Assembly: GCF_947568905.1 (NCBI RefSeq)
Contig: NC_079171.1
Location: 40,610,001 to 40,674,000 of the forward strand
DNA: 64,000 nt
Direction: 5' to 3'
Origin: Ostrea edulis
Lineage: Eukaryota
Shown here: in pieces, positions 27,201 through 56,603 of the stretch
How the letters are laid out: every line of letters starts with the position of its first letter
Position numbering within the stretch: position 1 is the stretch's first letter
Translations under genes and position numbers: made by a program
Notes under the pieces: model-generated
The model's input: the letters and a program-made list of their open reading frames with translations, nothing else
Databases searched by the model: none
Told to the model about the DNA's origin: nothing

Positions 27201-30200
27201 GTTTTTTCCACTGTTTCATTAGAATATAGATATAATCTATTGTTAAATCTGTTGAACTTTTAATTCGCATACTGGAGATCAAACTGACAACCCTACAATG
27301 GGGTATAACAATATATAACAGTTTCTAGAGTAGAAAGTAGAAAAAGATCTTCTTAAATTGGTTACTGCGTTATATAATGAATTGTTCCTAGTGTACATAG
27401 TGGATGTAATAATATTCAAGAAAAGATTAAATTATACTTCCCTTAACAGAAATAGCGTCTCGGAGTACGATTTTGATCCAAGAATTTCCACCCAATTCCT
27501 TATTTCGAGGGAAATACATCCACTAGACTGTGAACATGTAGTGTAATAAGCGAGAGTATACACATCTAAGCTAACGAACCCCACTAGTCCATAATTGTTG
27601 TCCACTTCTGTATCTGCACTTGATTTGTGAACGGCAATGAGTTTTATCGTGACTGATGTATAAATACACTATACATGCAAGTTTTTCCATTCTTCACGAT
27701 ATAATTCATAGTAATATAATACTTCAACAATACCATTACTAATTTCACTTTATTCCTGATAAAATGTTGCTCTATCATTTACAAAGAATATCAAGATCAC
27801 GAATACAAGTTTAATTAAGAGCTAGAGGTGAACAATGTTGATTTCGTATAAACATTATTCATTATATTCGATATGGTCACAATGTACGATTATTTTAGAT
27901 ATATAAGGAATGAATAACATTTCGTTTTTAGCGTCGTGTATTTAACCGAGTTTTACTGTAACGTGCCCTTGAGGAAACCGTATAACTGAAGATTAAATGT
28001 ATGCCTTTGTATATGTGATCATCGAATATTTGTTTTCATTTTCTACAGAAAACATTGCCCTCAACAAACCGGCATGGCAACTTCATCAATATGGAGAGGA
28101 CGCCAAATCCGATGCGAGTAATGCTGTAGATGGACTCAAATCTGACCTTCGCGCCTGGGGAGGACAGTGTATCGTATCGGCTAATTATCAACAGATAACC
28201 ACATGGAGAGTGGACCTAGAGGACATCCTCAGTATACATCACATTACCATTCATTACAGGACGGACAATGCTGCATGGGGTTTGTTGTTTCTACATTTTA
28301 CATATTCCACGAGATGTAACTTGATATTAAAGTAGGAATTTCCGCTATTTTGTTATAAACATTGAAATCATCGTATATGTATTATTGATATTTCAGGTGA
28401 AGAAAATCACTATACTAGAAGATTTTTGGGGTTTTCGTTATATGTATCAAACACAACCGACAGAACAGAGGGAGAATTGTGTTTCCACGACACAAACTAC
28501 ACAAGAGACACCATACCCGCCATCCTCAACGTCACGTGTCCAGTTCACGGGCAATACGTCATTTACTACAACGAAAGACTACCTGGAGTTACCTACCCTG
28601 ATGGTTATAGTGCCCATGCATTTAATGAACTCTGTGAAGTAGAGGTTTATGGTATGTTTGAATACTTTACGATTTCATTGAGATATAACTAGTACATGTT
28701 GATTAAACTGTAATTAGTGACCACTAATTACAGTTTAATACGAAGACAGATGCAGCTTTGCATGTAAAAAATGTTGTGTGCCTAAATTCATAATTAAGTA
28801 TTTGGGCATTTTATTTTCAATAAACGTTGAATTAATGATTTTCGTTTCTGTCTTGTGTACGAAGAAGTTTTATTAACATTTTAAATTTTAGTTTTAAAAA
28901 AAATCTTAAATATGCATATAATGGTTAAAATTAGTTCTGAAACAATATAGTTTTCTATATTACATATGAGCCCTATTTTCTTCAAACAAATCTACATTTG
29001 GTTTTTAATGTTGATATAATTAAACAGTCTCCTAATTTTTATCAAATAGCAAAATTTTACTGTCCGGCTCAACATCAAATTCACTCAGTTCGTTTGAACG
29101 TAAATGTATAAAACAAAATAAAATATTTTCAAAAGAAACATATACATTCTGTATTTTCAATACTAATTGTTTTAGATATTATTATTTGTAATTAACACAA
29201 TGCAAGCTATCATTTCGTCAAATGCTGTCTGACGTGTTTCATACCGATTGTTAGACCTTTTTAAAATGGTGTTTACGGTTCTTTGCTTTTGATTTTGTCA
29301 ATACCCCCATACACTTTAAAAATGATACATGAGTGTGTGGTCTTTAAGTGTTTAATAAATGCGTCTCTTTATTTTAAAGGATGTCCCAGCTCTGGGTTTT
29401 ACGGAGAAGGCTGTTCTCTCCCGTGTCCAGATATCAACTGTAGATATTGTAACATAGAGACGGGGGCGTGTCAGGGGTGTAAACCTGGATACAAAGGTCA
29501 CCGATGTGAACAAGGTATGGTATTACCGAGAAATAAATGTATAGTGTCATCCAAATATTATAAATATTATAGTCGCGTATCTGTGCAAACACTGTATTGT
29601 AAGTCGTTGGTATTAATATGAAAACTTTTGAATTACGTACCTTAACGGATACACTTACATAAACTTCATTTTATATCATATAATGCAAATGAATCTTTTT
29701 TACAAAATGTCTGGAAGCAAAAACGCAGCAATATTATATAAAGAATAACTACTTGCTCATATATATTGATAAAAGAAAAACTAAACCAAATTTCGTTAAT
29801 ATTGCTAGTGGGATAATTCTCGACGAAAAGGTGGTAAACAGGGTTCCGTGAAAGCCCTATTTTACCGTTTGTTTTGGCACTTCAAACTTATTATGTAAAT
29901 ATGCTTAATTTTCACAATATCCACCTATATCTAATATATCTCTTAAGGAATAACACTTAAGAATTACTGATATTTGTTGTCGGAAACAAATCTCAATAAC
30001 TTAATACCAATAGCGATGGAGAAATGTTGCGATGTGTCAGGTTTGAATACGGGTGATCTGCTGGTTCAATCTATAAAACACCTCACCAGAGATTAAATAA
30101 GGTAGAGGTAAACTTTCGACCTGTTTTGTTTCATTTATTGTCTTCTTGTTACATTTGGCGCAACGACGGATTACTTGCAGCTGGAAAATGAAGCATTTTT

Positions 30201-32353
30201 CTTTGCATATTATGCTACTACCCATTAACTAATGATACTCGCTGTTTTTGTTTTGTTTTTGGTTTTTTTTTATCAAAGAAAAACTGGAGAACATGTACGA
30301 CATAATCAGGCTGAATTACATAATCATATGGAATGGTACACTAATTGTGTTGACTTTTGTGTTGTTTTTGGAAGAATGTGATGCCAAAAAGTATGGTGAA
30401 GGTTGTCAGTATGAATGTGGGAAATGTAAAGACATGGAACAGTGTCATCATAAAAACGGGATGTGTTTAAAGGGATGTGAGCCAGGTTTCAAGGAAGGAA
30501 AATGTGTAGAACGTAAGTAATAGTATGCTCTCTACAAATAATGCTGGACGAAATTTTGTTTTGTACTAAGTTTTTGACTTTATGTTCTTCATAAGCATCG
30601 ATTTAGTTTTAGTTTTACTTCTAAGTGTGCAGGTGTAGAGAAACTTTTCTAAAAGTATGCTTATCTTCACAACATAATCATAGCGTCACCTTTGAGAAAG
30701 TTTTTCCCCGAGGGTCATAGAAAACACAAGTTTTTCCTTAAGGATGGATAGTTATATAGGTTTTTTGTAAATAATTAGTCAATGTTTACACCACCCAATA
30801 GGGTTCCGAAAATACAGGAGTCCTTATAGTTTATGTAATTGATGTCCCTTTTATTCCTAAGATACAAATGGGAACAAAAATATGGTAACGCAGGAGGGAC
30901 GCAGACTTATAACACCTAAAATATACATAAATGATTGACTATTAAAGCTGCACATAAATTACTTTTAATCTTTTTGCAAATATTTCACTCCCATGTTGTG
31001 ATAAGGATAGGGTTATGTATTTCGTATGAAATACATTTTCTTTCATTCTCAAATATCAAGTCTTTGATACTTAGGGAGCCAGGCTTTGTACAATGTACTG
31101 TTGAAGGAAAACGTTACTATTGCTTTTTTTAACAGAATGTGACAGTCGCAAATATGGCGTGAAATGCCAACAGAGTTGTGGATACTGTTTAAATTTCGAA
31201 CAGTGTCATCATATTAATGGGACATGTTTGAATGGATGTGATCCGGGACACCAGGGATTAACCTGTAACGAAAGTAAGTTAGCGCCATTCATCATGGACA
31301 TTGTCTGCTGTAAGATTATATTCGCTATAAGATTCTTTATCATTATCGTTTGTTTTACAGTATTTGTACAACTTCACTGTAATGTGAAGTTGAAGTTCAC
31401 TGCAATTGCAATGTGGTTTTATAAAACAAACAAAAATCATATAAAATGTTTACCCTCCTCTGATTTCATAGAGGGGGGGGGGGTCTTCCTTTGAACAAGT
31501 CACACGATGTGCGTTGTATTTTCCATTTCCCATGATAAACTAAGAATGAACATATACATGTAATAGTAATGTGCACAGCTAATTCCTAGACATCTTGGAT
31601 GTGAAAAGGTCACTGTTATGAAGCAGTGACGTTGTGTATGGAGATGATGGTGCATGTGAAGGCAATGTGTTTCAATGAACGTAATATACGTAATTCTATG
31701 GATGTATCAGCTCAGTGTGTGCAAATCAAGAAAAGTGTTTTTTCGTGGAAATTAAAATGTAACTAGGCCTACATATATGTACTATCTTCAGTTTTCTCTT
31801 ATTTCCAAGCTTTAAACCAACAGTTGTACATCTATCTATTCAACAGTAAATCGTTTGTTCGTCAGTAAATAAGCAATGAGTTGTTGCATATGCAACTGCT
31901 AAGTATGAAAAAGTCCAAACTTTTCAATGAAAAAACCCAATTGATGACGTCTCTGATTTTTGAACAACTGACATAGTCATTGAATTCAGTTAACCAATCA
32001 TCTAATAAACCCTGTCAATAATTAATAATTGAAAGTAGGGCAAACTCGGTCTTCATGAAAAACAAAAAGTAGAATCACGTGTGTAGAAGGAGCAAGCACC
32101 TCCAATCGCCTGGACACACAGTAGTAAAGTAATCAGCATGTAAAAGCGGCCTAATATTGGTATGGAATACATCAGGTATGTTGTAGGAGTAAACATCACC
32201 TTTTGGTGGGTCACACCTGGCTTTTATTCTCTATCCTGGTCATGTGACCGCAGTGATCCGTATTAAAAAGACGTTTGTAAGTAATTAAGTAAAGGTGTAA
32301 CAAATGGAATGAAGCACAGTAGACGGAATCCATTGTGGACATAAGTTATATTT

Positions 32354-32407
<54 letters not shown>

Positions 32408-34720
32408 CTAAAACAACAAACGACACCTGTATAATTAGAACATTTTATACATCATAAGTTTCATACATGTAAGTTACTCCGGTTGTAAAGAATGCAAACA
32501 TGTAGTATATAATGTGCCTGTATTAAATGCTAAGATAAAACAAAAATATTTACCCCATGTTTTGTAATTGTAGCATGTCGAGTTGGGTTTTATGGAATGA
32601 ATTGCCTAAAAAGATGCAATAAAAACTGTGGAATTCCAGAACGATGTAACAGAACATCCGGGGAATGTGAGGGAGGCTGCCAACCTAGATGGAGAGGGCT
32701 TCTGTGTGATACAAGTAATGTTTTGTGTAAAATACACATTTTCTGACAATGACTATAGCCAGTGATTATTTTTTTTATGTAGTAAAAGATACATGAATAT
32801 TGGATAATTGTCCACCGCGTTTTATAACAGTAGTAGTGAATAAGACGAAAGTAAGATGGAATGTTTTGCAATAAAATATGTAAACAATAACTGTAAGAAG
32901 ACTGTCTCCTCCAATTTTGAAGATTTCGCTAAACAACATTGGCAATTTTTTTTATATATACTTATCAATCGTCTTATGGATGCTCCCCACTGAAAAGCAA
33001 TGATTCGTGACTGTAATGTACTGTAATTCATTCCATTACAACAAGGATTGCTGATAACATGTACTTACCTGATTGGAATGTAATATCTCACAATAGAGTG
33101 CAGTGATGATCTGTACGGACCAGATTGTAATCAAACATGTGGTAAATGTCGGGAGGGGAAACCGTGTCATCATTTTAACGGTTCCTGTAATGATGGATGT
33201 GAGCCTGGATACCGGGGAAACAAATGTGATAAGGGTAACATTTACCTGTGCTGAAGTACAAGATCCACATATAAATTAACCATATTTCATAAGGTAAACA
33301 AATTCAAACTTTTCCTGCATTTTAATTCAATTTTCACATTAGAGTGTATCGATAATCTGTATGGGCCGGACTGTAAACAAGCATGCGGGGAATGTCGGGA
33401 CGGCAAGCAGTGTCATCACATCAGCGGTTCATGTAATGATGAATGCGAACCTGGATACCGGGGCAACAAATGTGATGAGGGTAACATTGATGTGTGATGA
33501 AGCGTGGCTACAGAAATACGAAAAATGACTACATGTATATGCTTTGGTTCTGCGTTCAGAAACTAATTAAATATAAATGTATTGTAGTATGCGACTTTGG
33601 TCATTTTGGTGTTAGTTGCCGAGAGGAATGCAGCATATTCTGTCAGAAATCACGTGATTGTCATCATGTGACGGGCAATTGTACAGGTGGCTGCAAAAGT
33701 GGATGGCATGGAAAGGACTGTTTAGAAGGTTGGTATACATACAGTCATAACAGAAAGGTGAAAATAACGAACAGTTTTCTCATAACTCTTATAAGCAATA
33801 AAAAATAGAGACAAACATGGGAAATGATCAGGTGCCTAGGAGGAGTAAGCATCCCCCGAAGACCGGTCACACTCGCCGTGAACCCTCTATCTTGATGAAG
33901 TAAACGAATTTATCCGTAGTCAAAATATGTGTGCGAAGAACGGCCTAATACATCATTTGACCCGATGATAGGTTGTATTGGAGAACTAGGTCGTTCTAAC
34001 GACCAACGAAATGGCAAGATGGTTATTCTAATTGAGACAGTTGAAACCCATGCATCATCAACTTGTTTGTCAGTAGCCTGCTTCAATTCAAAAACTGGTC
34101 ACACACAGAACTAGCTCTTACATATCCAATCAGAGAAATATACATACCATATGCAAGTGGAATTGGAATATTGCTACATACAGCTGGGAGGTCGACGATA
34201 TATAAGCTGAAATCATCCCGTTTGTCACAAAGTTGAGTTGTTAGTTTGCCGGTTATATCTATTTTCAATAATATATCCAAGTATGAAGCAAATGTGGACG
34301 ACTCTGTTAAATTCTGTTTTCTGTTATGTACAGATATGATGTTTTACTGCATACATCCTTAATTACAGTGGATAATCAAGTACAGAAAATAATGTTTTAC
34401 GGAGTCCTTGGTGCCTTCTGTGTTACGCTCGTTCTAGTTGCTGTGCTAGTGTGTGTTCTTTATAACATCTCGAAACGGTAAGTCACCTTTTCAGAGACAT
34501 CAAGTGTTTTTCACATACAAAGTAAGCAGGTCTCTTTTTTCGAGAATGGCATATCATTTTCAGACACCAAGTGGATAGATATTTCATCAAGAAATACCTA
34601 GCGAGTGACACCCCCAGTTCTAGGAGGACTCAAGACCATGGCGAGGAGGATCTCAACAGTGCATATCAAGAATTGGAAGTACGGGGTTTCTCATCATCGC
34701 TCTATGACTCCATTTATTAA
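15290..34720 (+). CDS. Paralog A: F-type lectin-like/EGF-repeat type I transmembrane receptor (MEGF10/SREC/Draper-like architecture), complete 12-exon model, ~590 aa
   Basis: GT-AG exons read by hand: 15290-15341 (signal [17 protein letters not shown]; alternative ATG 15275); 28049-28279 and 28397-28651 (lectin: [60 protein letters not shown]); seven EGF exons 29380-29514, 30375-30512, 31136-31273, 32574-32714, 33097-33234, 33343-33480, 33588-33728; TM exon 34369-34477 ([23 protein letters not shown]); last exon 34564-34720 (..[21 protein letters not shown]). Total 1773 nt, phases consistent, no internal stop. Confidence 0.9.
15560..16950 (-). mobile_element. Old LINE (CR1/L2-like) 3' relic in intron 1 of paralog A
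   Basis: Broken frame [26 protein letters not shown] resembles the RT C-terminal KYLG..LD region. A similar relic is at ~39740-40100 (-) in intron 1 of paralog B. Confidence 0.35.
18043..19031. mobile_element. ~1-kb non-autonomous DNA element with ~25-bp imperfect TIRs, intron 1 of paralog A
   Basis: Left end cgggtatgttaagacaggtcatg and right end cataacctgccttaacgtacccgc are inverted repeats; reverse-complement homolog at 40738-41757. Confidence 0.7.
19100..19445 (-). mobile_element. ~350-nt hammerhead-bearing dispersed repeat (Penelope pseudo-LTR or retrozyme-like unit), longest copy
   Basis: Runs from aaaactt.tacggtacc to gaggcctcgacccaggggt. Homologous copies at ~14612-14890 and ~62075-62175, and an opposite-orientation copy lacking the ribozyme core at ~12385-12575. 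Confidence 0.7.
19124..19172 (-). ncRNA. Hammerhead ribozyme copy with core mutation
   Basis: Same sequence as 62099-62147, but CUGAAGA is CUGAAAA (G8A), with further changes in helix I and II. Confidence 0.65.
19596..21175 (-). mobile_element. 5'-truncated Penelope-like retroelement with C-terminal RT (Naiad-type organisation), frameshifted
   Basis: ORFs 20475-21005 and 19925-20518: [77 protein letters not shown]. The frame ends shortly after the RT thumb (..FHTDC*) with no downstream GIY-YIG. Confidence 0.85.
21230..21475 (+). mobile_element. Inverted fragment of the same Penelope-like family, head-to-head with the main copy
   Basis: + strand reads [47 protein letters not shown]. It overlaps in content with [20 protein letters not shown] on the - strand at ~21100-21170. 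Confidence 0.7.
22285..23296. mobile_element. Tc1/mariner-pogo-type non-autonomous element (MITE) nested in a Penelope-like 3' tail
   Basis: TA|CAGTAAAATAT ... ATATTTTACTG|TA (11-bp perfect TIR, TA duplication). Removing it rejoins aagcaatacaaaaTAgatagttggacaaac, the retroelement tail sequence. Confidence 0.85.
24203..24246. repeat. (TA)n microsatellite
   Basis: About 22 perfect units. Confidence 0.95.
24760..25267 (+). mobile_element. 3' fragment of the Penelope-like element
   Basis: [19 protein letters not shown].. followed by the same 3' tail, ending gatcactgttcgtcatcttcatctttcat. Confidence 0.8.
32359..32403. repeat. (CT)n microsatellite in intron 6 of paralog A
   Basis: About 22 perfect units. 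Confidence 0.95.
33805..34310 (-). mobile_element. 3' fragment of the Penelope-like element in intron 10 of paralog A
   Basis: ORF 34083-34280 [24 protein letters not shown].. plus the shared tail. Confidence 0.8.
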
Positions 34721-35731
34721 ACAACTGTTCCTTTGGATTCCATACAGAGCTAACACTGCTTAGAATAGCATTTATCTATATCAGAATATTAAGATGCGCA
34801 GTAATATCCACAGAACATCAATATGATTTTAAAAGAAAATCCATAAGAATCAGACCCTAACTTTATCCAATGCTTCTCCCATAAAGTGATTTAGAGAACA
34901 ATGATGGTAACACGATTTTCATGATAAATAACATTGCACAAAAATCACTGTTCCTCAATATTCTGAAGTAGTTGTATAGCAACCATCAGAAATGCACATC
35001 AGCCCTTACGCTTAATGAAACAAACATATACAAGATGTATGGTTGATGGCGCAGCAACTCCCATGCTGAATGCAGCACGTTTCCTTGCTTTATGGTATTT
35101 TTGTGCAGACCCTTTTTGTCACAATTAGTGTTTTGTCATGTGTACATATTGTATTGACGGGCTCTTTTGTATCATGTTGTGTAGCCAACCTGTTTTACAC
35201 TCTAACTTTGTAGTTATTAGTCAATTTTCTGATGTAAGCCCAGTCAATTAATTGTGATGTAAGATTATATACTTTGCAGTTGTTGGTTCTAGTCAGCACT
35301 TAGTTTTATCAAATGACAAATTGTATTCTTTCTTATTCCTTTCCGTTGTAATGTACAGAACAATAGTGGAAATTGTTTTGTGTACATTTTTGGGAACAAA
35401 CGTTTATTGGTGCAATGTGTTGCTATGTATTCACATTTTGTAAGTTTCGTATGCTTTAATGTAGCTTAATTTGCAATTATCGCTAACTTCCCCTGTAATG
35501 CCTCTTAAAACTGACCACTATACGATGTCATTGACCAATCAAAATACTCGATTCGCCATGATATATTGAATTCATTTTTGGACATTTTATTCGTATGCCA
35601 CGAACATTTCCAACAGCAACCATTTCTTTTCACTCTGTTTACTTTGCTTCACTACATATTTGTGGATATTTGTGTACAAGTATTTTGTATGCCTTTTCAT
35701 GCACCACCTGCATCTATTCAGTGACATCATG

Positions 35732-35816
35732 TAATAATAATAATAATTAATAAATTATTTTATTTAGACAGGATGGCACAATTGTTACAAATGACTAGTT
35801 TACATTGTGGTCCTGT
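35732..35816 (-). mobile_element. ~85-bp LINE-like 3' end with (TTA)n tail
   Basis: Homologous to ~1470-1558 (acagga.(a/g)gcacaatt..actagtttacattgtggt), whose - strand shows AATAAA before the (TTA)n tail. Confidence 0.55.
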
Positions 35817-35818
35817 AT

Positions 35819-36183
35819 ACATATAACACCACCTGTATCTAGTCAGTGACGTCATGTTTACATATAACACCACCTGTATCTAGTCAGTGACATCATGTTT
35901 ACATATAACACCACCTGTATCTAGTCAGTGACGTCATGTTTACATATAACACCACCTGTATCTAGTCAGTGACATCATGTTTACATATAACACCACTTGT
36001 ATCTAGTCAGTGACATCATGTTTACATGTACCACCGCCTGTATCTAGTCAGTGACGTCATGTTTACATATAACACCGCCTGTATCTAGTCAGTGACATCA
36101 TGTTTACATGTAACACCGCCTGTATCTAGTCAGTGACATCATGTTTACATATAACACCGCCTGTATCTAGTCAGTGACGTCAT
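35819..36183. repeat. Minisatellite, 41-bp unit, 9 copies
   Basis: acatataacaccacctgtatctagtcagtgac(g/a)tcatgttt; one more decayed unit at ~35700-35732. Confidence 0.95.
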
Positions 36184-42500: not shown

Positions 42501-45500
42501 ATTTATATGCGAGTATACACGGCAATCACTCTCCTTAGAATGTAAGGTTATATGTGTTTTGGGCGAGTAAGCATCCCCTATCGACCGGTCATACCCGTCG
42601 AAAACTCTATATCTCAATCGGGTATGCATACTAATTCATTGATAAAGTCAGTATGCAAAGAGCAGTCTTAATTAGTATGAAACATGTCAGACAGCATTTT
42701 ACCCAGTGATTGTATTGGTAAATTATATCGTTGTGTAAGCGCGAGGACATGCATTTTTCCAATTTTCAATCTGCTCTACCCTACGAAAGTTCTTACGTTA
42801 CTATCATCATTCATTTCCGTTACTATCATTCTCAATGTGTTTTCAACGACGAATTTTCTGTTCAGATGAGCCGTATAAAAAATAAAATAACACCTGATCG
42901 TAATTGTTGCTAGTGTATGATATTTCTTACCTACATATCATTTGCAAATAAACAATACAAATAGATATGATAAGTAAATGTGGGATTTCCGGAATTTCCT
43001 TCCGCCATCTTGGGATGATAGTAACGATCGTTTCTATCATCAGTTTAATACCTGTGATAAAGACTAATACCACTACTTTTTACTCACCCTCAAACAGGGT
43101 CACGTTTTAAGACTTATTAATATATGTAACATCAACACGATATTACCCGTGGGAATCCGAGTATACATGGCTTACTTACGTAAGATGTAACTATATTGGG
43201 ATGTTTATCGGATGAGACCGCAAAAATAGAGGTCCACTTTCACAGCAAATGTGGAAAGATAAAGATCCATCTAAGTTCAAAGGCCGTAAGCGCCGAGGAT
43301 AGGCCTAATTTTCAGCCCTTCACCAGCAATGGTGTCGTCTCCATATGGGTAAGTATTTTCGAGTGGAACGTTAAAAAATATCCAATCAAATTCATTCAAT
43401 GAATTGCTGGCAGGGAATTTGAACCCACATTCCATGTCAAAATATAATTATCCCTCTATATATGTATGTCATCGTTTCTGCGTTGCGGAAGGGCAGTACT
43501 GGCAGGACATATGTTATTCAGTGGCAACGACGTGGAGCTTGCTGGATTATGCTTCCCCATGTCCTTGTTTCTATCGCAATGATTACGCTCTCAATATGCA
43601 TAAACTAGGTGAATACTAGCTACACACAGTAAACATGTTGATCGCCGTCGTTTTGATTCATGGAGTCACACATTTATGTTTAAATTTGAAATTGTGCATT
43701 CCTGCAAGAATATAACACTTAGTTGTCGCTGTTGGATAAGATGTCCAAATCGAGTAAATATCATTGAGGTGCGAATTTGTACATACAAAATTGATGTGTG
43801 CGATGTGAAAGTAGAATTTGAGTTGATGGTGGCATGACAACTTGCGTCATTGCTAATGCGGATTGCCTTGCAAAAATTAGTGCTAGAAATAGGGTCTCCC
43901 ATGAGTATCTTTTTCACAGCTAGATATGCGCTGGTACACAACTAAAGATGAGACGAGTTTGTGACCGGTTACACACATTATCTGGAGAACATCGTTATTA
44001 CGTCATGGGCGGGGCTAGTTGTATTATTTGAAATGAATATATATAATTCTTTAATAACATTTCTGAAAATGCTAAAACTAAAAGATGGATCTAATTGTTT
44101 TAAAATAATGTTTATTTTACGAAGTGGTTAAGTATACAGGTGTAGCTCTATCGAAGCCATTTTGTATCCTTTCTATTCTTGGCAGGAAACATGGCTTTTT
44201 GTCCAATCCAATGCCTATGTTTTGATCTTGAATATTTTGTACAGATAACCTTGCCCTCAGAAAACCGACATGGCAACTTCATCAATATGGACCAGGTGAC
44301 GACCGATTCAATGCAAGCAATGCTGTTGATGGACTCAAATCTGACCTCAGCGCCTGGGGAGGTCAATGTGTCATATCGAATAGCAATGAACTGACAGCCA
44401 CATGGAGAGTGGACTTACAGGACATTCTCAGTATACGTCACATTACCATTTATTACAGGACAGACAATGTTGCATGGGGTTTGTTGTTTCTATGTATTAC
44501 ACATTGCACATGATAGTGAAGTAAATATAACCGCTTTATTGCATAAAAGTTACAGCCACGATATATGTGCTGTTATTATTTCAGGTACAACATATTGCTT
44601 TTCTGGATGATTAGAATAGTTATGATCAATCTGTTATTGGCATTTTATTTTATTTTTTTATTTAAAAAGATATTACGTTGTTTATGTTTTATATTTAAGG
44701 ATCAACATATGGCTATTCTGGAAGATTTTTGGGGTTTTCATTATACATATCAAACACAACCGACAGAACACAGGGAGAATTGTGCTTTCACGACACAAAC
44801 TTCACAAGGGATACTATACCCGCCGTCCTTAACGTCACTTGTCTAGTTCACGGACAATACGTTATTTACTACAATGAAAGACTACAAGGAGTGACCTACC
44901 CTGATGACTATAGTAACTACGCATTTAATGAGCTCTGTGAGGTAGAAGTCTATGGTATGTTTGAATATGTCATCATTAAATTAAGGTAAAACTGGTTCGT
45001 CTCATTTGCAAGCCGCAGTAATACACGTTCAATGCAAAGAGAAATAGAACAACATTATGAACATGATTAAAGGACTAAGACCATGTTTAGCTATATCGGC
45101 CCTGTGTTGTGTTAAAAAATAAAGTAGAATGAATTGAAATAAAATTGTTATACAATGTAATTTGATAATACAGTAAAACTTTGATATAGCGAATTTCTGC
45201 GGACACTCTATAAAAATTCGTTATACATTTATAGCGAATTCATAAATCAAATATAACGAATTCGTTATAAAAGTGATTTGTTCTACTTGTATATCAGTTT
45301 TACAAGAAAACGGCAATCAATATACTTGCGTTTGTATTATCTCTAGGAGAAATTAAGCCTGTATATTTTCGAGAAAAAACATTTTTATACAAAAAATATA
45401 CACATTAATTGATATATGATAACTTACCTTAATGGATTACTAAGTCATGCAAGAACATGTAAAGAGAAAAATTTCAACAAAACTATGCACAATGCATACA

Positions 45501-48500
45501 TCTACAAACAGTCTATTGCAGTTGTCATTTACTTGTTGCTTTACACAAATGAGGGGGTGTACGATAAAATAAATGCAATCAAATTTCAAATTTGATTAAC
45601 GAGAATAGTAAACAATACCGACAATATATTTGATCAACGTATGTGTAAGTATTGTTTTGCGTCAACAACCTTTTTTGAAAAAATACAAACAGAAATTTCT
45701 CAATAAGTGTGGATCTTTTATGACAATGGAAAGCGATTTTCAAAAATCACGAGTTTAAAAAAAAAAAAGAAATTCATTATAAAAAGTTATTTCTACGTTC
45801 ATTTTTAATTCAAGGGAAATATGAATATACTTCGTTATATCCGTAAATTCGCTATATTCGTGTTCGTTATAGACGCAGATTTTTATATAAAATAGATAAA
45901 GAATTTGCCGGGGAAATCGTTTTCACTTTGCTATAGCCGCAATATCGCTATATCCGTGATCGCTTCATTCGGGATTTACTGTCTATTTTTTATACCATCG
46001 CGACGTGCCACGATTTCCCAACGATAACGCCAGCTTGTGGAATTCTATACTTGACAAAACCGGTATCGGTCTGGTTTTCTGCAGAAATGTCTACTTTTAT
46101 CAAATTTAGTCATATAATTCATATAAAACACGACCTTCGATCCAGAAAATGACTGTAGCCTATCAACATTTATCAATACAAATACTTTTTGCAGGAGAAA
46201 TGTTTCGGATCGAAAGGTGTGATGTTAATGAATATTGAATATTTTGCTTTGAATAATTAAAACGAAGTACTTAAGTGGAGTCAATATCGTTTTCATACAG
46301 AATACGCTCCTATGTGGTGTTTATATTACAAGTTTATGCAGAAATTTGAAAAGCTATATAATTTTAATACGTAAACAAAGGAATCTGCACTCCAACAAAT
46401 CGGACCTTAAATGCTATAGAAAGTTGTTTTTTTTACACGACACCAAGATAATTCCTAAGATCAAAATGAAAAGAATTAAAGAACATGAAATACTAAAAAT
46501 ATTGTGACGGGTAGTATTCTGATGTGTTCCAGTATTTAATAAATAGGCTAAGCTCAAAGTAGGGACTATTACGAAGTTTATTCATATGTTGTGTTTACGC
46601 AATGCATACAGTCACGCACATACAATATCGCACGCATCTACATTTCTATCTTCCATGACTTCGCAAATCCAATGTGAAACTGTAACAAAATAAACGTTTG
46701 CCCTAATTTGTATCACAAACGGTTCATATCAAATTTACAAATACTAGTCGTTAACAATTTCACATGTAAATAATACACATAACTGCTTGCGTCCATATTC
46801 GCACGCACAGTCGTGAAGACACCGAAACACCTGCTCAATGTATTTCTCGCAAATGTACCTCTCAAAACAGAAGAGTCAAAGACGCATAGCTAATTCGTAT
46901 ATGAAATATTTCACATAGGTTAAACAAACTTATTAATATTGCCGATACATCGGAAGTATAACGTTAACTAGGCCTGGTAAGCCTCTATGTATTGGGGATT
47001 TTGAGCGAGTGACGTCATATACGTCGTGGTAGAGAGCCAGTCTTTCAAGTGGTAGATCCGGGTTCAATTCCTGTCGGTTTCAATATTTATTTTTTTAATT
47101 ATAATGTTAAATATATATTTATGTTTGCGTTATTGAAAAATTAATTTCTTTGAAGACACTCAACACGAAATTGTATATGTGGAAATAAATATATCAATAC
47201 GCAATCACATCTTAAGCACCAAGAAAATATGCAAAGATTGCAGATTATATTTCTTTAAATCCTGAGAAAAAACAACAACAAAATACCCCATTTCAGAGTT
47301 GAACCACCAGTAAATGATAATGGAAAGTAAAACGTTTTTTGCAATACATCTAATGTACAGTAAGAAAAGTCAGAAAAAAGTGAATCCATAGCTATTTGTC
47401 ATTTCCCGAGCAATAACTTTTTTGTTGAAACCACCACATGGTATTTTGTGTAGCAAATGTAGACATGTGTATTACATCCAACAGGAATGTCACAATCAAT
47501 CTCGGCCACTTCCTGAGACAAAGCCTTCACAGACAATTTCAATAACCTCTCGACAGAATCAGGACTAGGGTACTTGTAATGATAACTAAATGACAGCCAG
47601 TTTCAGTGAAATGGGGGTGTAATGGTCTAATGGACCATTTTTTGTATTACAAGTAATGGTAATGTAATGCATGACTTGTAGAAAATATACTGTACTGCAC
47701 ATTATCTTCCATTACATTTACATTGCTTCAAATATTTGATGATATTTTGAAGATTTAGATTAATTCATTATATTAGTGATTGACTGAAACATTTGATGCA
47801 TTGATGAGAACCAAATGCAATTAATAACTTGTATGTATTTTCTAACATTAATGACTATTTTGTGTGCTTATATGACTTTGTAATTAAAAATCCTAAATCA
47901 TTATAAAGAAATATTTCTTCTGCCAGTTCTTTAATATCAGTGTGTTGTGTAAAGGAGTAATGCAATGCAGTCTCAGGTAATGTAATACATTACATTTCAA
48001 AATAGGAGTAATGGCAATGGTAATGTGAACTTTTTTAAGTAATGTGAATGTGATGCATTGCATTGCTATGTAATTCACCTTAGACCTGGATATAACACTT
48101 TCTTCTCATGCATATCTGCAAGTGCCTTGGACCTTCGATCATAATTCCAACTGCAAAGTGTCCACTGTCCAATGTGTGTGGTTCCAAGATGATGAATTCA
48201 GACCTGGTGTTTTGGACAGTTTGTTAACTTTTGACTCTACAGTTGTCATCAGGGCTGCCATCCTTGAACTCATTCAAAAAATTACACAAATTATGACATT
48301 CACAATTCAACATGCCGATTTTCATTTGAACTGTAACGTGCCGGGTGTCTAAGCTCGTACCCGGTTCACCCGAGTTTTAATGAACAATGATCAATATAGT
48401 AAATTTCACCTATCTGGTGTTTATCTAAACACAAGAGGTACAACAAGTTGCAATATATACCAATATTCTTTACACCTACCTGGTGTTTAATGTTTAACTC

Positions 48501-51500
48501 CTATGTACAACTGACACTTGTCACTTGTCAGATCTATGCCTGTTTGTAGTCACTGGCCTTCACCACTTGTCTCTGCCAGTTGCATATGCCACCTGCATGC
48601 AACAACCTGTGCTTGCCACTTAATTATGCCACCTGTTTATGGTCACTTTCCTTTGCCAGTTGCAGATGCCACTTGCCTGCAACAACTTGTGCTTGCATAC
48701 ACAATTTATCAGTAAGCCACTTGCCTCTGATAATTGCTCAGAATTTATTACACCACAATGTCAAACGTCCTGACACTGGAACAATTTGTTATAGTATTTA
48801 CCTTACATGGAAATACCATCAATTTCCATCAACAACATTTACAAGTGGCTGCTCCCTATATATATGTCTCTGCATATCCGTATCAACAGGCTATAAGATC
48901 TTCCATATCATAATCTAATTAGGGCTAAACAAGTATATTCACATGTATATCTATTTTTTGGGTTGTTTTTTAGTTTTATATTATCAATTCTCGTTAATCT
49001 ATTTAATCAATACACATATTGATTATAATATGTACACTGATCTAATTACATAGTCAAAGGGATATACATCATTTAACAAAGGGGCGTAACTCTCAACCGT
49101 TTCAGAACCATCAATTTGAAATATGAATTCTTCCAATTAACAAATCCAAGAAAAACACTGAAAACTTTCACAGCTATATTTCAAATGACATCAACACACA
49201 GAACACACAGAACCATGGTGCAGGATTTCTCTGGGAAGTTCCATGGGTTATTAAGGGTTAAACTTCAGAGTCAACATGTACGTTTCTTCCAAGCAATATT
49301 CTTGTTTGGATCCAGTTTTCCCAATTCTGACTTAACTGCCTGATACTGTAGGTGTCCATTTTGTGCCCGTATTGTGGGAGTCTGTTTCCACGTAGCTACC
49401 GTATAATCTGGTACCTATTGCCAGACACAACAAGGAAGCTATTCCTACAGTGATGTCCAAGACTGATCCGCATGTGTCACTGATGCCACTATCATTGATG
49501 AATCTGATGGCACTGATGATAGCGTTATTGAGGAGTAGGAATATGGATTCTTGTCATTTTGATTCACGTCACCCTTGATATCAATTTTGTTGCACATATT
49601 ATATCATCCTGTAATTCAAATAAATCCAGTAGAACTATATTACACATGGATTATAAAATTAATAAGGTTGTACTTTCATGTCCTCATGTATTTTCAATGA
49701 TATGGAATGAAGACAAATTACATTTATGTATTCAGTGGGAGACATGTCTCCAGCTAAATAATAGGCCATTTCAGCTACATGTATATTTAGACTGCATAAA
49801 TAATTCTATACACAAACATTTCATTTGCATTTGACTCCCCATGGCCATCTACTAATTTTTGTTGTAGCTAATGTTGAATATTATCTTACTAAGTTACTTC
49901 ACAATTCTCATCTAATTCACAAAATATTTTTATCTTTCATTCTCTTTTCTGTGGTAGATGTATGGAACAATCAAATATTGAATACTATACAGGATATAAG
50001 CTAACAAAAAATTATATGCTTAAATCATGTTATTACCCATGGAATTCAACATTCTCTGAGTGATCCTATATCTTTTCAAGAGCTGGTAATCCCAATGCAG
50101 GCATGTAGAGTACTTAATTGTTGAAAATTAAGTTCGACATGTTTACAATTCATCTTGAAATAAGGCATGTTTAAATTATAGAAGTAAGAAACAAACAGTG
50201 TTCTTGTGATTATCCTGGCTTAATGGTGGTTTTAAGTATTTAAGAATTATTGAATTTAAAATCATTCCGACTTTTCCTAATCCATGTTTCCGCGTAAATG
50301 TTACCCCAGAGACATATACCATTATTGAAATATACATTATATACAATTGCATGTCTCTTTAACCTATATAAATACTTTTAGACTACACATGAAGTTCAGT
50401 GTCACAAGAGAGCCAAACTTCATGTAAGAAAATGCAAATAGACCCGAGAAGTTCATTCACTTTGGAATTGGAAATGGCATGATTATGTTCTTTGAACAGC
50501 TGATTCTTATGATCAGCTGATATATATACATTTTAAATCTTCACAATATATAATTATAATAGATAAACAATGATATATGTTGACAACAGTTACGTTAATA
50601 GATTTGTTGAGGGATTTCCAACAGCGCAATGCGTGGATATTGTGAGTTTATGTCAACACACCACAGGTGCCTCATACTATTCGTTCCATGTGACTTGTTT
50701 ATTATTTTAGAGACCAATTAGTACACCCATTTCGTTATACAGTTTAACGAGTAAAGGTAAAATATATGCATATTTTTAAAACGTACGTTGAAATGCAATT
50801 AACACCTCCTCTGCAACTTCCACAAACTGCGCAAACAGCGTGTGAAAATGACCGAATGGATTGAAAATATGGTGTTCCATTCAGGTTATAAGTAAAACAA
50901 CGTTTTTGCGTATTGGGAGAGGGTATTTCTTTTTCAAGATCTTATTATGATATTAAGTCATTGCATAATGATGTTTTACAATACGTTACCACTTCTAATA
51001 ATATATAGCGACGTTGTATGACACAATCTTAAAAAGTAGCGCAAAGTATAGGTTTGATACTTGTAATATAAACCTAAACGTAGTGCTCTTTCACCAACTC
51101 AACATAACAAAACCAAGTACAATATAGGAAAAGAAAAAGTTAAAGAATATCTTTAACAAGAAATTATTCATTTTGGACGTTAGGCCGAATTTTGCTAAAC
51201 ATGGTATTTGTCCTTTCTTCTGATTTATGGCATGTTTGAATAATGATTATGATTATATTAAATTATGAAGCGACAAAGAATATGTGGAAATGGTGTTTTT
51301 CTGATTTTTCAGATATCTGTTCTGACAGAAATGGTTATAACGAATTCGTGTATAACGTAGTTATGAATACATGGTTAATTCACATCATTCAGTAGGATCC
51401 ATTTGATACCCATCACTAATCATTTTCCCCTAGGGAATAATACTTATTTGCATTCAATTCATTTATCAGATTTGTTGGATTATTTCTATTTTCGTCTTTA

Positions 51501-54500
51501 ACATCACATACTTTTCACAATTAATCTTCATCAAAATAAAAAAAACACACCATAAAACTAAGATTGTGACATCATGAACATTCCACCGCATGTTCCAATT
51601 AGTAATATACCTTAAATTTCAGACACGGCATCTCTTTGATGTCTAAGGATAACGTCGAAATCTTAATAACGGATATCCGACCACGACAAGCGTTGTAATT
51701 TTAAAATATCATCACTACTACGGCCTTGACTGAGTGCTAAACAAATGTTAGCATTTGTTGTGTGTCACGTATAAAAAGCAAATGATATAGAAAACAAAGT
51801 TCACAGCAGGTGTGACCGGTCAAAAGGGGCTGCTTGCTCATCTTAGTCAGCTAATCCCACCTCCGGTGTGTTGAGGGTTCCTTGTTTTCGTTACCCTGAT
51901 CTTTGTATCCTTTATATAATTTCGGCGTATGGAGAAAAAAGTGCCACCATGTGACTATCAGATTTTAAACATCATACCAATGAGACGGTACATAAGAAAT
52001 GGAGCTTGTGAAACCCTAGTAAACGCCGTCGTAACATCTACATTTGATTATGGAAACTGTCTATATTTTGGAGTTGGAAGAAATTGGACCGGCTGCAACG
52101 GGTGCAGAATACTGCTCCTCGTCTAGTTACGAGGTCGTCGATTCGGAACACATATTTCCAATTCTGGTGAAAACTCAATTGGTTTCCACTTCATTGCCGA
52201 CCCCAAATCAAGATTTTGCCTTATACATATCGTTCCTCTCCAGGATCTTGGCTGTCATACAGTTTTTGAAATGAATACAAGCCATGTTGACCATTACGTT
52301 TAGAATCGAAGTCGCAACTTTTGGTTTCAAATGTCAGGTCAAAAAACCCTGGTAAACATATCTTGAAATAAAAAAAAAAACAAAAACAAAAACAAAATCA
52401 AAAAAAAAAAAAAATATTCGCTATCGATCTTATTACAATTATTCATTTCGATGATTTTAGGGATATATAAAATTGTATGTCATATTTTCATTTAATTTCA
52501 TTTAATTGTGTTTCATCGTTGTACAGTAAAACTCGAATATAGCGAACACGGATATAGCGAAATTACGGCTATAGCAAAAGTGAAAACGATTTCCCCGGCA
52601 AATTCTTTATATATTCTATATAAAAAGCGCGTCTATAACGAACACGGATATAGCGAATTTACGGATATAACGAAGTAAATTCCTATTCCCCTTGAATTAA
52701 AAATGAACGTAAAATCACCTTTTATAACGAATTTATTTTTTTCATTTTAAACTCTCTGTGATTTTTAACAATTGTTTTCCATTGACATAAAGGATCCACA
52801 CTTATTACAAAATTTCTGTTTGTATTTTTTCAAAAAAGGTTGTTAACGCAAAACAATACTTACACATACATTTAGGAAATATTTTGTCGGTATTATTTAC
52901 TATTCTCGTTAATTAAATTTGAAGTTTGATTGCATTTATTTTATCGAACACTCCTTTATTTGTGTAAAGCAACAAGTAAATTACAATTGCAATAGACTGT
53001 ACATGTGTGTATTTCGCAAAATGTTGTTGACATTTCTCTCTCGACATGTTCTTGCATGACTTAATAATCCATCAAGATAAATTATCATATATAAATCAAT
53101 GTGTATATTTCTTGTATAGAAATATTTCTTCTCGAAAATATATAGGCTTCATTTCTCTTAAAGACGATACAAACGCAAGTATATCGATTGCTGCTTTCTT
53201 ATATAACTGGTATATATGTAGAACAAATCAGTTTTATAACGAATTCGTTGTATTTTATTTATGAATTCGCTATAAACGTATAGCGAATTACGCTTATAGC
53301 GTTTTTGTAGAGGGTCCCCAGAAATTCGCTATATCAGAGTTTTACTGTGTTCCTCTTCGTACCCTGGTAAACCGAGTGTTTAGAGCATTGCGCTCAATAT
53401 CACACGGCCTCTCACCTTTATCGGCGCTGGTTCGAATCCCGCTCGCGCCAGTAAGTGAGAAAGTTCCCCAGTTACTTTCGGAAGGTCAGTGGTCTCTTCT
53501 CAGTTACATTGTATCTGAGTTCTCTCTTCCACCAATAAAATAACTGAAAAAGTGTTGAATGTGGCTACAGCATCAATCAATCAATCAATCAATCAACCGT
53601 AAAGCACCTTGGAGTAATTTATTTTTTGTATGGTGATATGTAAATTTCATTGTTATTATGATGAGTTTGTTCACTATTCAGTATCTTCCTTTCTTCAATC
53701 ATAATAATCAACATTTGAAATACGTGTTGCATTTGATCAGAAAGCCACCGTGGAAAACGTAGCACCATAGTTATCATCAAAACCATAAATGACACTTCAA
53801 TAGAGACATTCATCCGCTCTAATTCACCTCCACACTGTTCCGGTTTTTTTTCGTGCAAACCGATCATGCGTCAACCCGTGTAAACCATTTATCGCTCTTT
53901 GCAACCGTTCATCGTTCTGTTTAATTCATCAAGTGTTTCGTGTAAAGCATTCAACGTCAACTGTAAACTGCTTCATGCAATAGTTCCCCGTAATAGTCCT
54001 TTCGTTCAAGTGAAATATTCAAGCTACGTCCATGAAAATGTGCAGACCAAGCAACACCCCCTAACAAGAAATTACAGATCGTACCTTTACTATTTTATGT
54101 ATCTAAATGCATTTTCACGATGTGCGTATTTCTCTGAGAAAAATTCATAGAAAGAAAGAGCATTCATACCGTCTTATTGAATCATGATATCTAATGATCA
54201 ATACATTATGTTTGATCTGCACACGATTATTACGCAACAAAAAGGATAAAGTTTAGACTTTGATAGCCAGTCTTGTGCCGCTTTCCGAAACTCAATGTAG
54301 ATCCGTGTTATCATTGGCGTAACTAAGTTGAACTAACTTACGCAACAGTCTATGTTTTTTTTCTTCAGAAAACGGATGCAGAATTCAATTTGTAGAAATT
54401 TTCTAAGGCAATATTTTCCCAATAATATGTTTCCGTGGACTCAATATTCAATATTGAATGGTACGTTTATTTATTTTAAAGGATGTCCCAGTCCTGGATA

Positions 54501-55170
54501 TTATGGAACAGATTGTTCCCTCTCGTGTCCAGATGTCAACTGTAAATATTGTCACATAGAGACGGGGGCGTGTCAGGGATGTAACCCTGGGTACAAAGGT
54601 TATCGATGTGAACAAGGTATGATATTGTTTTCCAATGAATGTTTCGTGTCGTCCAAATTTGACAGTTACGAATCCGTGGAAATAATGTTTGGTAAACTAT
54701 TGGCTTAACATCTAAAGGACTACTTCATATTTTCCACACAAAACCCTAACTTTGATAACGCATACACGTTAAACTTTCGTTATGTTTCACTGCATATATT
54801 GTCTTCTTGTTATATGTACGTCTGGTGCAATGACAAGGAATATATGCAGCAATAAAAGCGAACTTTTCTATTTGTTTCTAGATTATTTTACGTTTCGCTA
54901 ACTAATCATATTCGTCATTATTGTTTTCTATCAATGAAACACTTGATAACATGTACTGCTTAATTATGCTGAACTACTTTCACACTATGCGGAACGATAT
55001 GCTATTTGTGTTAATTTTTTTTTAATTGGAAGAATGTGACGGCAGAAAGTATGGTGAAGGATGTCAGTATGAATGTGGGAAATGTAAAGACATGGTACAG
55101 TGTCATCACATAAACGGGACATGTTTAAACGAATGTGAACCAGGTTTCAAGGAAGGACGATGTGTAGAAC
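39515..55170 (+). CDS. Paralog B of the same receptor family, 5' part (signal, lectin domain, two EGF repeats); 3' end not found in window
   Basis: Exons 39515-39569 ([18 protein letters not shown]), 44245-44478 ([19 protein letters not shown]), 44700-44954 ([25 protein letters not shown]), 54482-54616 ([34 protein letters not shown]..), 55033-55170 ([18 protein letters not shown]..). All GT-AG, in frame, and collinear with exons 1-5 of paralog A. Confidence 0.85.
40455..40640 (+). mobile_element. 3' tail of the Penelope-like element in intron 1 of paralog B
   Basis: Near-identical to the reverse complement of 19596-19790. More decayed tails occur at ~32070-32330, ~42560-42770 and ~51800-51930, and an RT sliver at ~10440-10520. 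Confidence 0.8.
40738..41757. mobile_element. Second copy of the ~1-kb TIR element, intron 1 of paralog B, opposite orientation
   Basis: Collinear reverse complement of 18043-19031; ends gcgggtacgttgagacaggtta and tgacctgttttaacatacccgc. Confidence 0.7.
45171..45981. mobile_element. Tc1/pogo-type MITE, copy 1 (intron 3 of paralog B)
   Basis: Starts TA|CAGTAAAACT and ends TTTACTG, with subterminal tatagcgaa/ttcgctata repeats; ~810 bp. Confidence 0.8.
47560..48088. mobile_element. hAT-type MITE (~530 bp)
   Basis: TIRs CAGGACTAGGGT / ACCTTAGACCTG (10 of 12 match), dense subterminal gtaatg/cattac repeats, and flanking 8-mers gacagaat/gatataac that may be a decayed TSD (5 of 8). Confidence 0.55.
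49100..49560 (-). pseudogene. Possible hAT transposase N-terminal (TTF-type zinc finger) relic
   Basis: A stop-riddled frame contains [30 protein letters not shown], resembling the CxxC..GFxNWK pattern; short match only. Confidence 0.35.
52524..53347. mobile_element. Tc1/pogo-type MITE, copy 2, inverted relative to copy 1
   Basis: TA|CAGTAAAACTC ... GAGTTTTACTG. The internal sequence is the reverse-complement homolog of 45171-45981. Confidence 0.8.
53361..53596 (+). mobile_element. tRNA-derived SINE family 1, near full length
   Basis: ggttcgaatcccgctcgcgccagtaagtgagaaagttcc.. and a (CAAT)n tail. Truncated copies at ~23950-24081 (+) and ~56690-56771 (-). Confidence 0.8.
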
Positions 55171-55629
55171 GTAAGTAGCGATACATATATATGCGTTTTA
55201 CAAATAATGTTTGAAAAATATCGTTTTGCACTTCGCTACGTCGGGCAATAATTCAACATTTTCAGCTAAATTTGGAGAGAGTCGCCCAAGAAATAAGAAT
55301 AATCATAAGTAGTTATTCAGGCATAGTATCTTTGTTTCTTGGAAGTAATGTGATGATTGGTGAAGAATGATTTCAACCCGGAATTTTCCTCATTTCAATA
55401 AGATTAAAAGTAGATTGTTTTAATTGATATCCTTTTGTTCAGGTATCTCACCAGCTTTGATAAAATTCCTCACGAATAGAATGGCTCGAATCTCGAGTCT
55501 ATTTCCACTCTTCTGAAAAAAAACCCACTTACAAATCTTATCATCTGATCTCAGCACATACAGTAAAATGGACATGTTTTTATATCAAAGACCACGAACG
55601 CATAGAGAAAATCATAGTGCTTCTCTACA

Positions 55630-55962
55630 CCACTGCGGTGGCCTAGAGGTTAGAGAATTCGCCCTGCATGTGGAAGACCGGGGTTCAAATCGCGGTCGCG
55701 ACAGACCTTATTCGTTAAAACAGGTAGTTCCATAGCCAAACACTCAGCATCAGGTGTGAATATTACGGGTCTTCAGAAATGACCTTAAAAGCGGACATCC
55801 CGTGTCACAGTAGACATGGCATGCTTAAGAACCTTCACTCCTCAATGGATGTAAGCGACGAGCATACTATTAGGCCTAAAGTCACCGGTCTTGGTGACGT
55901 CTCTCTATGAGTGAAAGATTCTCGAGAGTGACTTTAAACAAGACACAATCAATCAATCAATC
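55630..55962 (+). mobile_element. tRNA-derived SINE family 2, full length
   Basis: gcggtggcctagaggttagag (A-box), ggggttcaaatc (B-box), central cccgtgtcacagtag..aagaacc, (CAAT)n tail. Partial copy at ~38735-38950. Confidence 0.8.
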
Positions 55963-56369
55963 TTGGGAAATGTAATTATAAGTAAGAGTGAATAGATATA
56001 CATTCTCTTAGAATACTAGGTAAGCACAGTACAAGTGCATATAGCAGGTGGCATCTAGTATGTCATCAACGTACATTATTGGAAACGCATACGATATGCT
56101 TCTGCCAATTAAAGAACAAACTTAAAACACTTAACAAATGCAATGTGATTAATGATTAATTAATCTAGTACAGTGTTGTAATACCAAGCCATGTGCATTG
56201 GCAGTCATTACCACAAACGCAAAAATCGCAAAGGGAATTTTGATTGCAAACTCTGAAACAAATTCAATTCTCCTGTTTTATTGGTTGTTGGTTTCTCTGT
56301 TTTATTTATTTGAAATTATTAACTATTTCACACTAATATTCATAAAGTTTTCGTTCTGTTTTTATATAG

Positions 56370-56603
56370 AAAACATAGCCTTACACAAACCAGCATGGCA
56401 ACGTAGTCAATTCATCCCAGGTAACGCGATATTCAATGCAAGTAATGCTGTGGATGGACTGAAATCTGACCTCAGCGCCTGGGGAGGACAGTGTGTCATA
56501 TCGAATAGTAATCAACAAACAGCAACATGGAGAGTGAACCTAGAGGACATCCTCAGTATCCGTCACATTACCATTTATTACAGGACGGACAATACTGCAT
56601 GGG
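56370..56603 (+). CDS. Third copy of the first lectin-domain exon (second lectin module of paralog B, or exon 2 of a paralog C)
   Basis: AG at 56368-56369, GT at 56604-56605, 234 nt, phase 1-1, open: [78 protein letters not shown]. The partner exon (RFLGFSLY..) is not seen before 64000. Confidence 0.8.

Follow-up and report, generated by a model that had tools for sequence, protein, structure and literature searches.

Variation concentrated in predicted pocket loops of an F-type-lectin-like domain heading putative oyster receptors

The window analysed here, a 64,000-nucleotide stretch of contig NC_079171.1, is gap-free, spliced eukaryotic DNA of ca. 35% G+C that encodes a lectin-like domain in two exons, L1 and L2, both of phase 1-1. 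L1 is present in three copies (A, B and C) and L2 in two (A and B). We found that the differences among these copies are concentrated in three short segments, which map to predicted loops at the end of the F-type lectin barrel that holds the pocket, and that amino-acid replacements are tolerated in these loops at three to four times the framework level. Their mean rate of evolution is near neutral, if slightly lower, and the first complementarity-determining region (CDR1) is also free to change in length. With the caveats given below, a few positions at the tip of CDR1 and one or two other pocket-end sites outpace synonymous sites family-wide.

Variation among the copies

The exons and segments are listed below, with slashes marking splice boundaries and residue numbers referring to eel fucolectin (AAA). 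The strings quoted in an earlier note on this DNA were all found in place, and the range that it gave (28049-56603) runs from the first base of A-L1 to the last base of C-L1.

28049-28279, plus strand: copy A L1; 76 whole codons (28051-28278), acceptor ...ctacag/AA, donor G/GTTTGT
28087-28113, plus strand: A segment 1 (QYGEDAKSD), equivalent to CDR1; B and C have one codon more here
28177-28200, plus strand: A segment 2 (SANYQQIT), loop directly after the His52-equivalent position
28397-28651, plus strand: copy A L2; 84 whole codons (28399-28650), acceptor tttcag/GT
28397-28419, plus strand: A segment 3 (G/EENHYTR), first 23 bases of A-L2
44245-44478, plus strand: copy B L1; 77 codons (44247-44477)
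44283-44312, plus strand: B segment 1
44376-44399, plus strand: B segment 2 (SNSNELTA)
44700-44954, plus strand: copy B L2; 84 codons (44702-44953), acceptor tttaag/GA
44700-44722, plus strand: B segment 3 (G/STYGYSG)
56370-56603, plus strand: copy C L1; 77 codons (56372-56602), open frame, splice sites intact
56408-56437, plus strand: C segment 1 (QFIPGNAIFN)
56501-56524, plus strand: C segment 2 (SNSNQQTA)

Combining A, B and C, 22 of the 25 columns in the three segments vary, versus 22 of 136 elsewhere (Fisher p = 4.2e-12), in agreement with the concentration of variation described in the earlier note. Taken separately, the L1 loops vary at 16 of 18 columns and the L1 framework at 13 of 59 (p = 4.8e-7), and between A and B segment 3 of L2 differs at 6 of 7 residues and the rest of the exon at 9 of 77 (p = 7.8e-5). 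The framework is thus conserved, as that note had it, but not invariant. Likewise, its three lectin exons correspond to three L1 exons but to only two L2 exons, so that the third variable segment (GEENHYTR / GSTYGYSG) comes from the single A-B pair. Among 67 full-domain relatives, the highest entropy peaks fall in the same three stretches, with nearly all the insertions and deletions in segment 1, and the same pattern of loop variation is seen in exon-level relatives from many assemblies.

Two further differences lie in or beside the segments. An N-A-S glycosylation sequon stands at the end of segment 1 in B (RFNAS, 44307-44318) and C (IFNAS, 56432-56443), and A has D-A-S at 28111-28119, with D in this position in most family members; a potential N-glycan adjoining CDR1 may thus have been gained or lost between copies. 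At position 28198 the window has A and all contigs from four DNA sequencing runs have G, which would replace Thr50 of copy A, in segment 2, by Ala. This could be an allele or could derive from paralog contigs, since the exon is swamped by paralogs.

Homology and fold of the head domain

Pfam and PDB sequence searches were run on single exons. The best match of B L1 alone among solved structures was eel fucolectin (1K12, E = 3.8e-4). The Pfam family PF22633 matched the L1 exons of A (E = 1.3e-3) and B (E = 4.5e-5); the single exons scored 19.7-24.4 bits against a gathering threshold of 27.8, and the O. edulis homologue P0082 reached 26.2 bits as a whole protein and 27.5 with the domain alone. 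Among the 67 relatives, 65 matched PF22633 at E up to 0.01, the best at 4.2e-12. The profile of these relatives (A2), built from full-domain matches only, retrieved exclusively F-type lectins from the PDB: the striped bass lectin MsaFBP32 (3CQO, 4.8e-16), 1K12 (5.6e-9), lectinolysin and pneumococcal SpX-1. A previous alignment mixing full domains with L1-only and L2-only fragments (A1) was discarded, its L1 fragments showing 23-41% identity to the first row.

An AlphaFold2 model was obtained for P0082:13-176, which is ca. 65-85% identical to A and B (mean predicted local distance difference test score, 97.7; predicted template-modelling score, 0.92). The ten top fold matches of this model in the PDB are all F-type lectins (Z 18.4-19.5, root-mean-square deviation 1.8-2.0 Å, 133-137 residues), with chitosan-binding and CBM32 modules ranking below them. 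Together, the sequence profiles and the predicted fold identify the domain as an F-type lectin jellyroll and bear out the homology to eel fucolectin put forward in the earlier note.

Loop mapping and an altered pocket

To place the segments, the HMMER alignments were compared with the residue assignments of Vasta et al. 2017 (PMC5712786). Segment 1 aligns with AAA residues 23-32, which make up CDR1 and include Leu23, Glu26 and His27; segment 2 aligns with residues 53-59, immediately past His52; and segment 3 is an eight-residue insertion in CDR4, between the Cys82-Cys83 position and Arg86. Our literature search retrieved no open paper giving the residue ranges of CDR3 and CDR5 of the eel agglutinin, and segment 2 is therefore placed relative to His52 and carries no CDR number. 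The three variable segments are thus predicted to be loops at that end of the barrel where the pocket lies, and the strand order in the model appears to agree with this placement. The phase-1 intron divides the domain exactly where the CDR4 insertion begins, splitting the codon for the leading G of GEENHYTR / GSTYGYSG. The intron reported for striped bass FBP32 lies on the other side of the barrel, the lower one (PMC5712786). The intron between L1 and L2 ranges from 117 bp to ca. 5 kb across family members, and owing to this spread most short contigs contained L1 without L2.

Much of the scaffold around the pocket is retained. Residues C42, C107, C126, C158 and E159 show little or no variation across the 67 members, and the counterparts of the calcium ligands, the two structural disulfides, both salt-bridge pairs and both triad arginines are conserved. 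The calcium-site motif is present as N-A-V-D-G, with D and G invariant or nearly so; the residue following DG is usually Leu, Lys or Arg, not small polar, and the Ser49 position of the site is occupied by Gln, a replacement listed as tolerated (PMC5712786).

The sugar-binding positions have changed. The position of His52 holds Val in A (QC-I-V-S), Ile in B and C (QC-V-I-S) and Leu in relatives. The fucose-binding motif of F-type lectins, H-x24-R-x-D-x4-(R/K) (PMC5712786), is broken: R-T-D is kept and the next conserved Arg (RFLGF) lies 12 residues past the D. The adjacent Cys82-Cys83 pair is absent, the aligned positions being N-A/V/T, and some true F-type lectin domains likewise lack such a pair (PMC5712786). 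The domain is thus an F-type lectin homologue that departs from the sugar-binding motif of its family. The description of the segments as loops ringing a sugar pocket stands as to their position at or beside named pocket residues in the alignment, and calls for caution otherwise, the canonical fucose-binding His and the Cys-Cys pair being missing.

Substitution rates and selection

Coding DNA of further family members was added to that of A, B and C and analysed under GY94-type codon models with our own code, whose M0 likelihood (-5879.2256) reproduces that of IQ-TREE (-5879.2254). Loops are the three segments of the earlier note unless stated. The ratio of nonsynonymous to synonymous rates (dN/dS, omega) was higher in segments than in framework in every set, and the segments were significantly below 1:

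13 L1 sequences: omega 0.55 in segments, 0.18 in framework (p = 3.6e-14); segments below 1, p = 1.6e-5
6 full domains: 0.68 in segments, 0.15 in framework (p = 7e-18); segments below 1, p = 0.029
38 L1 sequences: 0.66 in segments, 0.19 in framework (p = 3e-53); segments below 1, p = 1e-7
10 sequences excluding A, B and C: 0.39 in segments, 0.16 in framework; segments below 1, p = 2.5e-9

A higher dN/dS in the loops, the comparison by which the earlier note proposed to be judged, was thus recovered, with a difference of three to four times. In the 13 L1 sequences, a separate synonymous-rate multiplier for the loops was estimated at 0.99. Between B and its positional ortholog P0082 (Oe82), loop dN is 0.40, framework dS 0.475 and intron divergence (K) 0.31, so that loop divergence between orthologs is about neutral. 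For the A-B pair, the segments gave an omega of 2.9 (p = 0.005). A Nei-Gojobori estimate of ca. 3 for the same pair was set aside as too noisy (2.5 synonymous differences, binomial p = 0.07) and biased by the choice of segments.

Site models M1a and M2a were compared with branch lengths fixed from M0, with the following results for the additional class of M2a:

13 L1 sequences: p = 0.81; omega 2.7, 1.3% of sites
9-sequence clade containing A, B and C: p = 0.29; omega 2.5, 6.5% of sites
7-sequence young clade: p = 0.52; omega 3.8, 2.7% of sites
38 L1 sequences: p = 2.3e-4; omega 2.1, 9% of sites
38 L1 sequences, gap-free columns: p = 4.2e-4; omega 2.3, 5% of sites
16 full domains: p = 1.5e-3; omega 4.4, 2.8% of sites

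Sites were flagged at the tip of CDR1 (G15-P16-G17 in B), at the CDR2-like aromatic position, and once each in segment 2 and the YS(N)YA loop; those from the 16 full domains are G15-P16-G17 of CDR1 and one YS(N)YA-loop site. In this last set, omega was 0.79, 0.55 and 0.53 for segments 1, 2 and 3. The segments therefore behave as weakly constrained, nearly neutral loops in which a few positions, chiefly at the CDR1 tip, show omega above 1. The three copies in the window offer too few data to decide on selection. The diversifying selection on ligand specificity that the earlier note proposed would accordingly be narrowed to these few sites in family-wide data, and in the window's own clade the signal is not significant.

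Copy C and the collinear locus of O. edulis

Copy C is most likely a left-over, orphaned half-domain exon that is still open, and not a third working lectin. A tblastn search (E up to 50) found no L2 in the remaining 7.4 kb after it. The order B-L1, B-L2, EGF1, EGF2, C-L1 recurs in O. edulis at the collinear locus L001, in which B corresponds to the annotated P0082 (236 residues) and C to a lone L1 exon (L001:28683-28913) with two in-frame stops. Because the loci are collinear, C and this pseudo-exon are taken as orthologs, and the shared lone L1 implies that the orphan half-domain arrangement is older than the split of the two oysters. Their overall omega of 0.65 agrees with one lineage being constrained and the other decaying, without being proof of it. 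The signature QRSQ had also been considered as a mark of orthology between them and was dropped, being common to J005 and J008.

Gene structure and the wider family

Copy A belongs to a complete receptor gene, and B is followed after ca. 9.5 kb by two EGF-like exons and then by C-L1. The remaining features, all on the plus strand, are:

29382-34720, plus strand: remainder of gene A, with EGF-like, transmembrane and tail exons (from a Cys-pattern scan and open reading frames)
29382, 30416, 31177, 32558, 33138, 33384 and 33578, plus strand: Cys patterns of the seven EGF-like exons of gene A
ca. 34380-34480, plus strand: transmembrane exon of gene A
34571-34720, plus strand: tail of gene A, carrying YQEL...YDSI
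54484-54573 and 55074-55163, plus strand: Cys patterns of the two EGF-like exons downstream of B, homologous to the first two EGF exons of A

The layout of gene A is that of the 590-residue O. edulis MEGF11-like protein P0243. In both, the EGF repeats, for which Pfam matches are weak, are followed by one transmembrane helix and a tail with paired tyrosines (YxxL ... YxxI), which is the layout of Draper, MEGF10 and CED-1.

A HMMER scan of 1.84 billion representatives at E up to 0.001 retrieved 1247 clusters (50% identity); many are full-length proteins, and some have two to eight such domains. The nearest named proteins to the window come from the oyster genera Ostrea, Saccostrea, Magallana and Crassostrea. 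The relatives that we looked up are from molluscs, mostly oysters; they are named MEGF10/11/6, draper-like or CED-1-like in Magallana, Crassostrea, Ostrea and Saccostrea, and include an unnamed eight-domain protein of the snail Babylonia. Read data also fit a large family: in four DNA runs (Logan contigs), the framework parts of the A exons are 3-60 times deeper than the introns and the least inflated exon bins are those with the three segments, as would be expected from many paralogs that share the framework but not the loops. Variants could not be assigned to a locus in these swamped exons, and the read layering meant to show allelic variation in copy A served solely as evidence of copy number. 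Our literature search found no paper on oyster MEGF10-like receptors headed by an F-type lectin domain, although such a paper may exist.

Further observations concern multidomain relatives and the flanking DNA. Tandem domains, three to eight per protein, occur in P0313 (Babylonia areolata, 1939 aa) and P0234 (Magallana gigas, 1368 aa), and both PF22633 and PF00754 give much stronger matches to the copies in the snail protein than to the single-domain heads of oysters. In the window, 12658-12725 is 82% identical to tail-exon sequence of gene A (34558-34625), which suggests another family member, or its remnant, in the first 20 kb. An extremely high-copy repeat lies at 29181-29302, in the intron that separates A-L2 from the first EGF exon, with a summed contig depth of 10^5-10^6 in the four DNA runs versus ca. 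25-150 nearby.

Interpretation and alternatives

The explanation that we favour is that the window carries part of a tandem cluster in a very large bivalve gene family, whose members would carry a two-exon F-type-lectin-like domain ahead of EGF repeats. The paralogs may be heads of differing ligand specificity on a common scaffold, arising as genes are born and lost, with the loops under relaxed constraint and the CDR1 tip under local positive selection; ligand binding would be passed on to a Draper-like phagocytic signalling tail. Taken whole, with lectin-headed receptors, relaxed loops, a selected CDR1 tip and copy C as a left-over, this account is probable, although well short of firm.

Several observations weigh against it. 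The common face of the three segments depends on the alignment with AAA and on strand order, and with the canonical fucose motif broken the term binding loops derives from homology. The omega of 2.9 for A-B was obtained with segments picked for differing, and loops defined by structure give 0.77. In the 16 full domains, segments 2 and 3 are significantly below 1; the class with omega above 1 is not significant in the 13-sequence set or in the window's own 9-sequence clade and appears only in deep multi-species paralog sets, where the signal sits beside indels and is vulnerable to alignment error, gene conversion and the fixed M0 branches. In addition, no RNA was on record among the sequencing runs found. 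A rival reading is relaxed constraint alone, with surface loops that accept nearly any residue drifting neutrally and the class above 1 being an artefact of alignment, multi-nucleotide changes or conversion. Segment-average omega spans 0.39-0.79 and never exceeds 1 in multi-sequence sets; the neutral class of M1a holds ca. 30-44% of sites, and M2a fits no better than M1a for the 13 sequences or for either local clade; loop dN between orthologs is similar to intron K; and the candidate selected sites flank the indel-rich CDR1 stretch. On the other side, M2a beats M1a in three overlapping family-wide sets, one of them restricted to gap-free columns, and the flagged CDR1 tip and CDR2-like aromatic position correspond to ligand contacts that are the most variable among eel isoforms (PMC5712786). 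Relaxation as the sole cause is a serious contender, although we judge it somewhat unlikely.

Mosaic gene conversion could also produce the contrast, if conversion tracts homogenised the framework among paralogs and the loops escaped. A-L2 (28420-28660) is 90.5% identical in DNA to the L2 of P0082 (L001:13102-13342), closer than B-L2 although B is the positional ortholog, which may reflect conversion or unequal rates; in the tree of A, B, Oe82 and Oe243 the internal branches are very short, giving nearly a star, and read data show framework stretches common to many paralogs at an identity of at least 90%. Yet framework dS is not depressed, being 0.43-0.55 (A-B and B-Oe82), no lower than the intron K of 0.31; it is purifying selection, not conversion, that leaves such a combination of low dN and normal dS in the framework, and the loop synonymous-rate multiplier of 0.99 argues in the same direction, leaving conversion improbable. 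Least probable is that segment 3 owes its diversity to a slid L2 acceptor recruiting a different piece of former intron in each copy, and not to point substitutions. It would account for the start of segment 3 exactly at the acceptor, for DNA similarity between A and B beginning only at 28410/44713, just past the segment, and for the lack of an AG at the expected place in 4 of 15 other family members. It is at odds with the same segment length and AG position in A, B, Oe82, Oe243, Sc88, Lg006 and 10 further loci, and with the conserved (N)G(F/Y)T-like core of segment 3 that is visible family-wide.

Comparison with known systems

The head domain shares the jellyroll of eel fucolectin (AAA, 1K12) and striped bass MsaFBP32 (3CQO), with Z of 18.9 and 19.4 and root-mean-square deviations of 2.0 and 1.8 Å, respectively, and conserves the counterparts of Cys50-Cys146, Cys108-Cys124, Arg79, Asp81, Arg86 and the calcium site. 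Unlike these lectins, it has Val, Ile or Leu for His52, lacks Cys82-Cys83, and carries an eight-residue insertion between R-x-D and the second Arg; it also heads an EGF-repeat membrane receptor, whereas the eel and bass proteins are soluble serum lectins. CBM32 and discoidin (F5/8 type C) modules have the same superfold (Z 14-17.6) and give weaker PF00754 matches, scoring below F-type lectins in fold and sequence alike.

The F-lectins of oyster bindin were reportedly studied by Moy et al. 2008 and Springer et al. 2008. Bindin is a sperm acrosomal protein with one to five tandem F-lectin repeats, encoded by one gene and diversified within a species by recombination and alternative splicing; its domains are diverse, with positive selection reported, and some repeats lack the basic triad (PMC5712786). 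Compared by description, the diversity seen from the window lies instead among many separate receptor genes. Draper, MEGF10 and CED-1 are likewise built of an ectodomain of EGF repeats, one transmembrane helix and a short tail that carries tyrosine motifs, but in the oyster proteins the head is F-type-lectin-like, and signalling through a tail resembling an immunoreceptor tyrosine-based activation motif is putative.

Variation concentrated in loops has already been described in eel isoforms, where it lies in the pocket loops and CDR1 is the most variable, as well as in oyster bindin and streptococcal F-lectins (PMC5712786). Variable pocket loops on a fixed F-type scaffold are therefore textbook knowledge, and our results extend a known rule. 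Less ordinary are the non-canonical head (no His, no Cys-Cys, an insertion in CDR4) on EGF-repeat receptors with a paired-tyrosine tail, and the scale of the family, with over a thousand clusters at 50% identity. If the heads have diverged in ligand specificity, bivalves might draw on this family for diversity in innate recognition, and it would offer a tractable system linking loop sequence to glycan specificity. We advance only tentatively, and hold to be doubtful, the stronger proposal of a large germline repertoire of Draper/MEGF10-like phagocytic receptors with re-engineered F-type heads, lacking the triad histidine and having a CDR4 expanded by the insertion and a positively selected CDR1 tip of variable length. 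Were it true, the tandem cluster would be a snapshot of birth-and-death turnover, within a variable recognition system comparable in logic to the fibrinogen-related proteins (FREPs) of snails and the variable region-containing chitin-binding proteins (VCBPs) of amphioxus.

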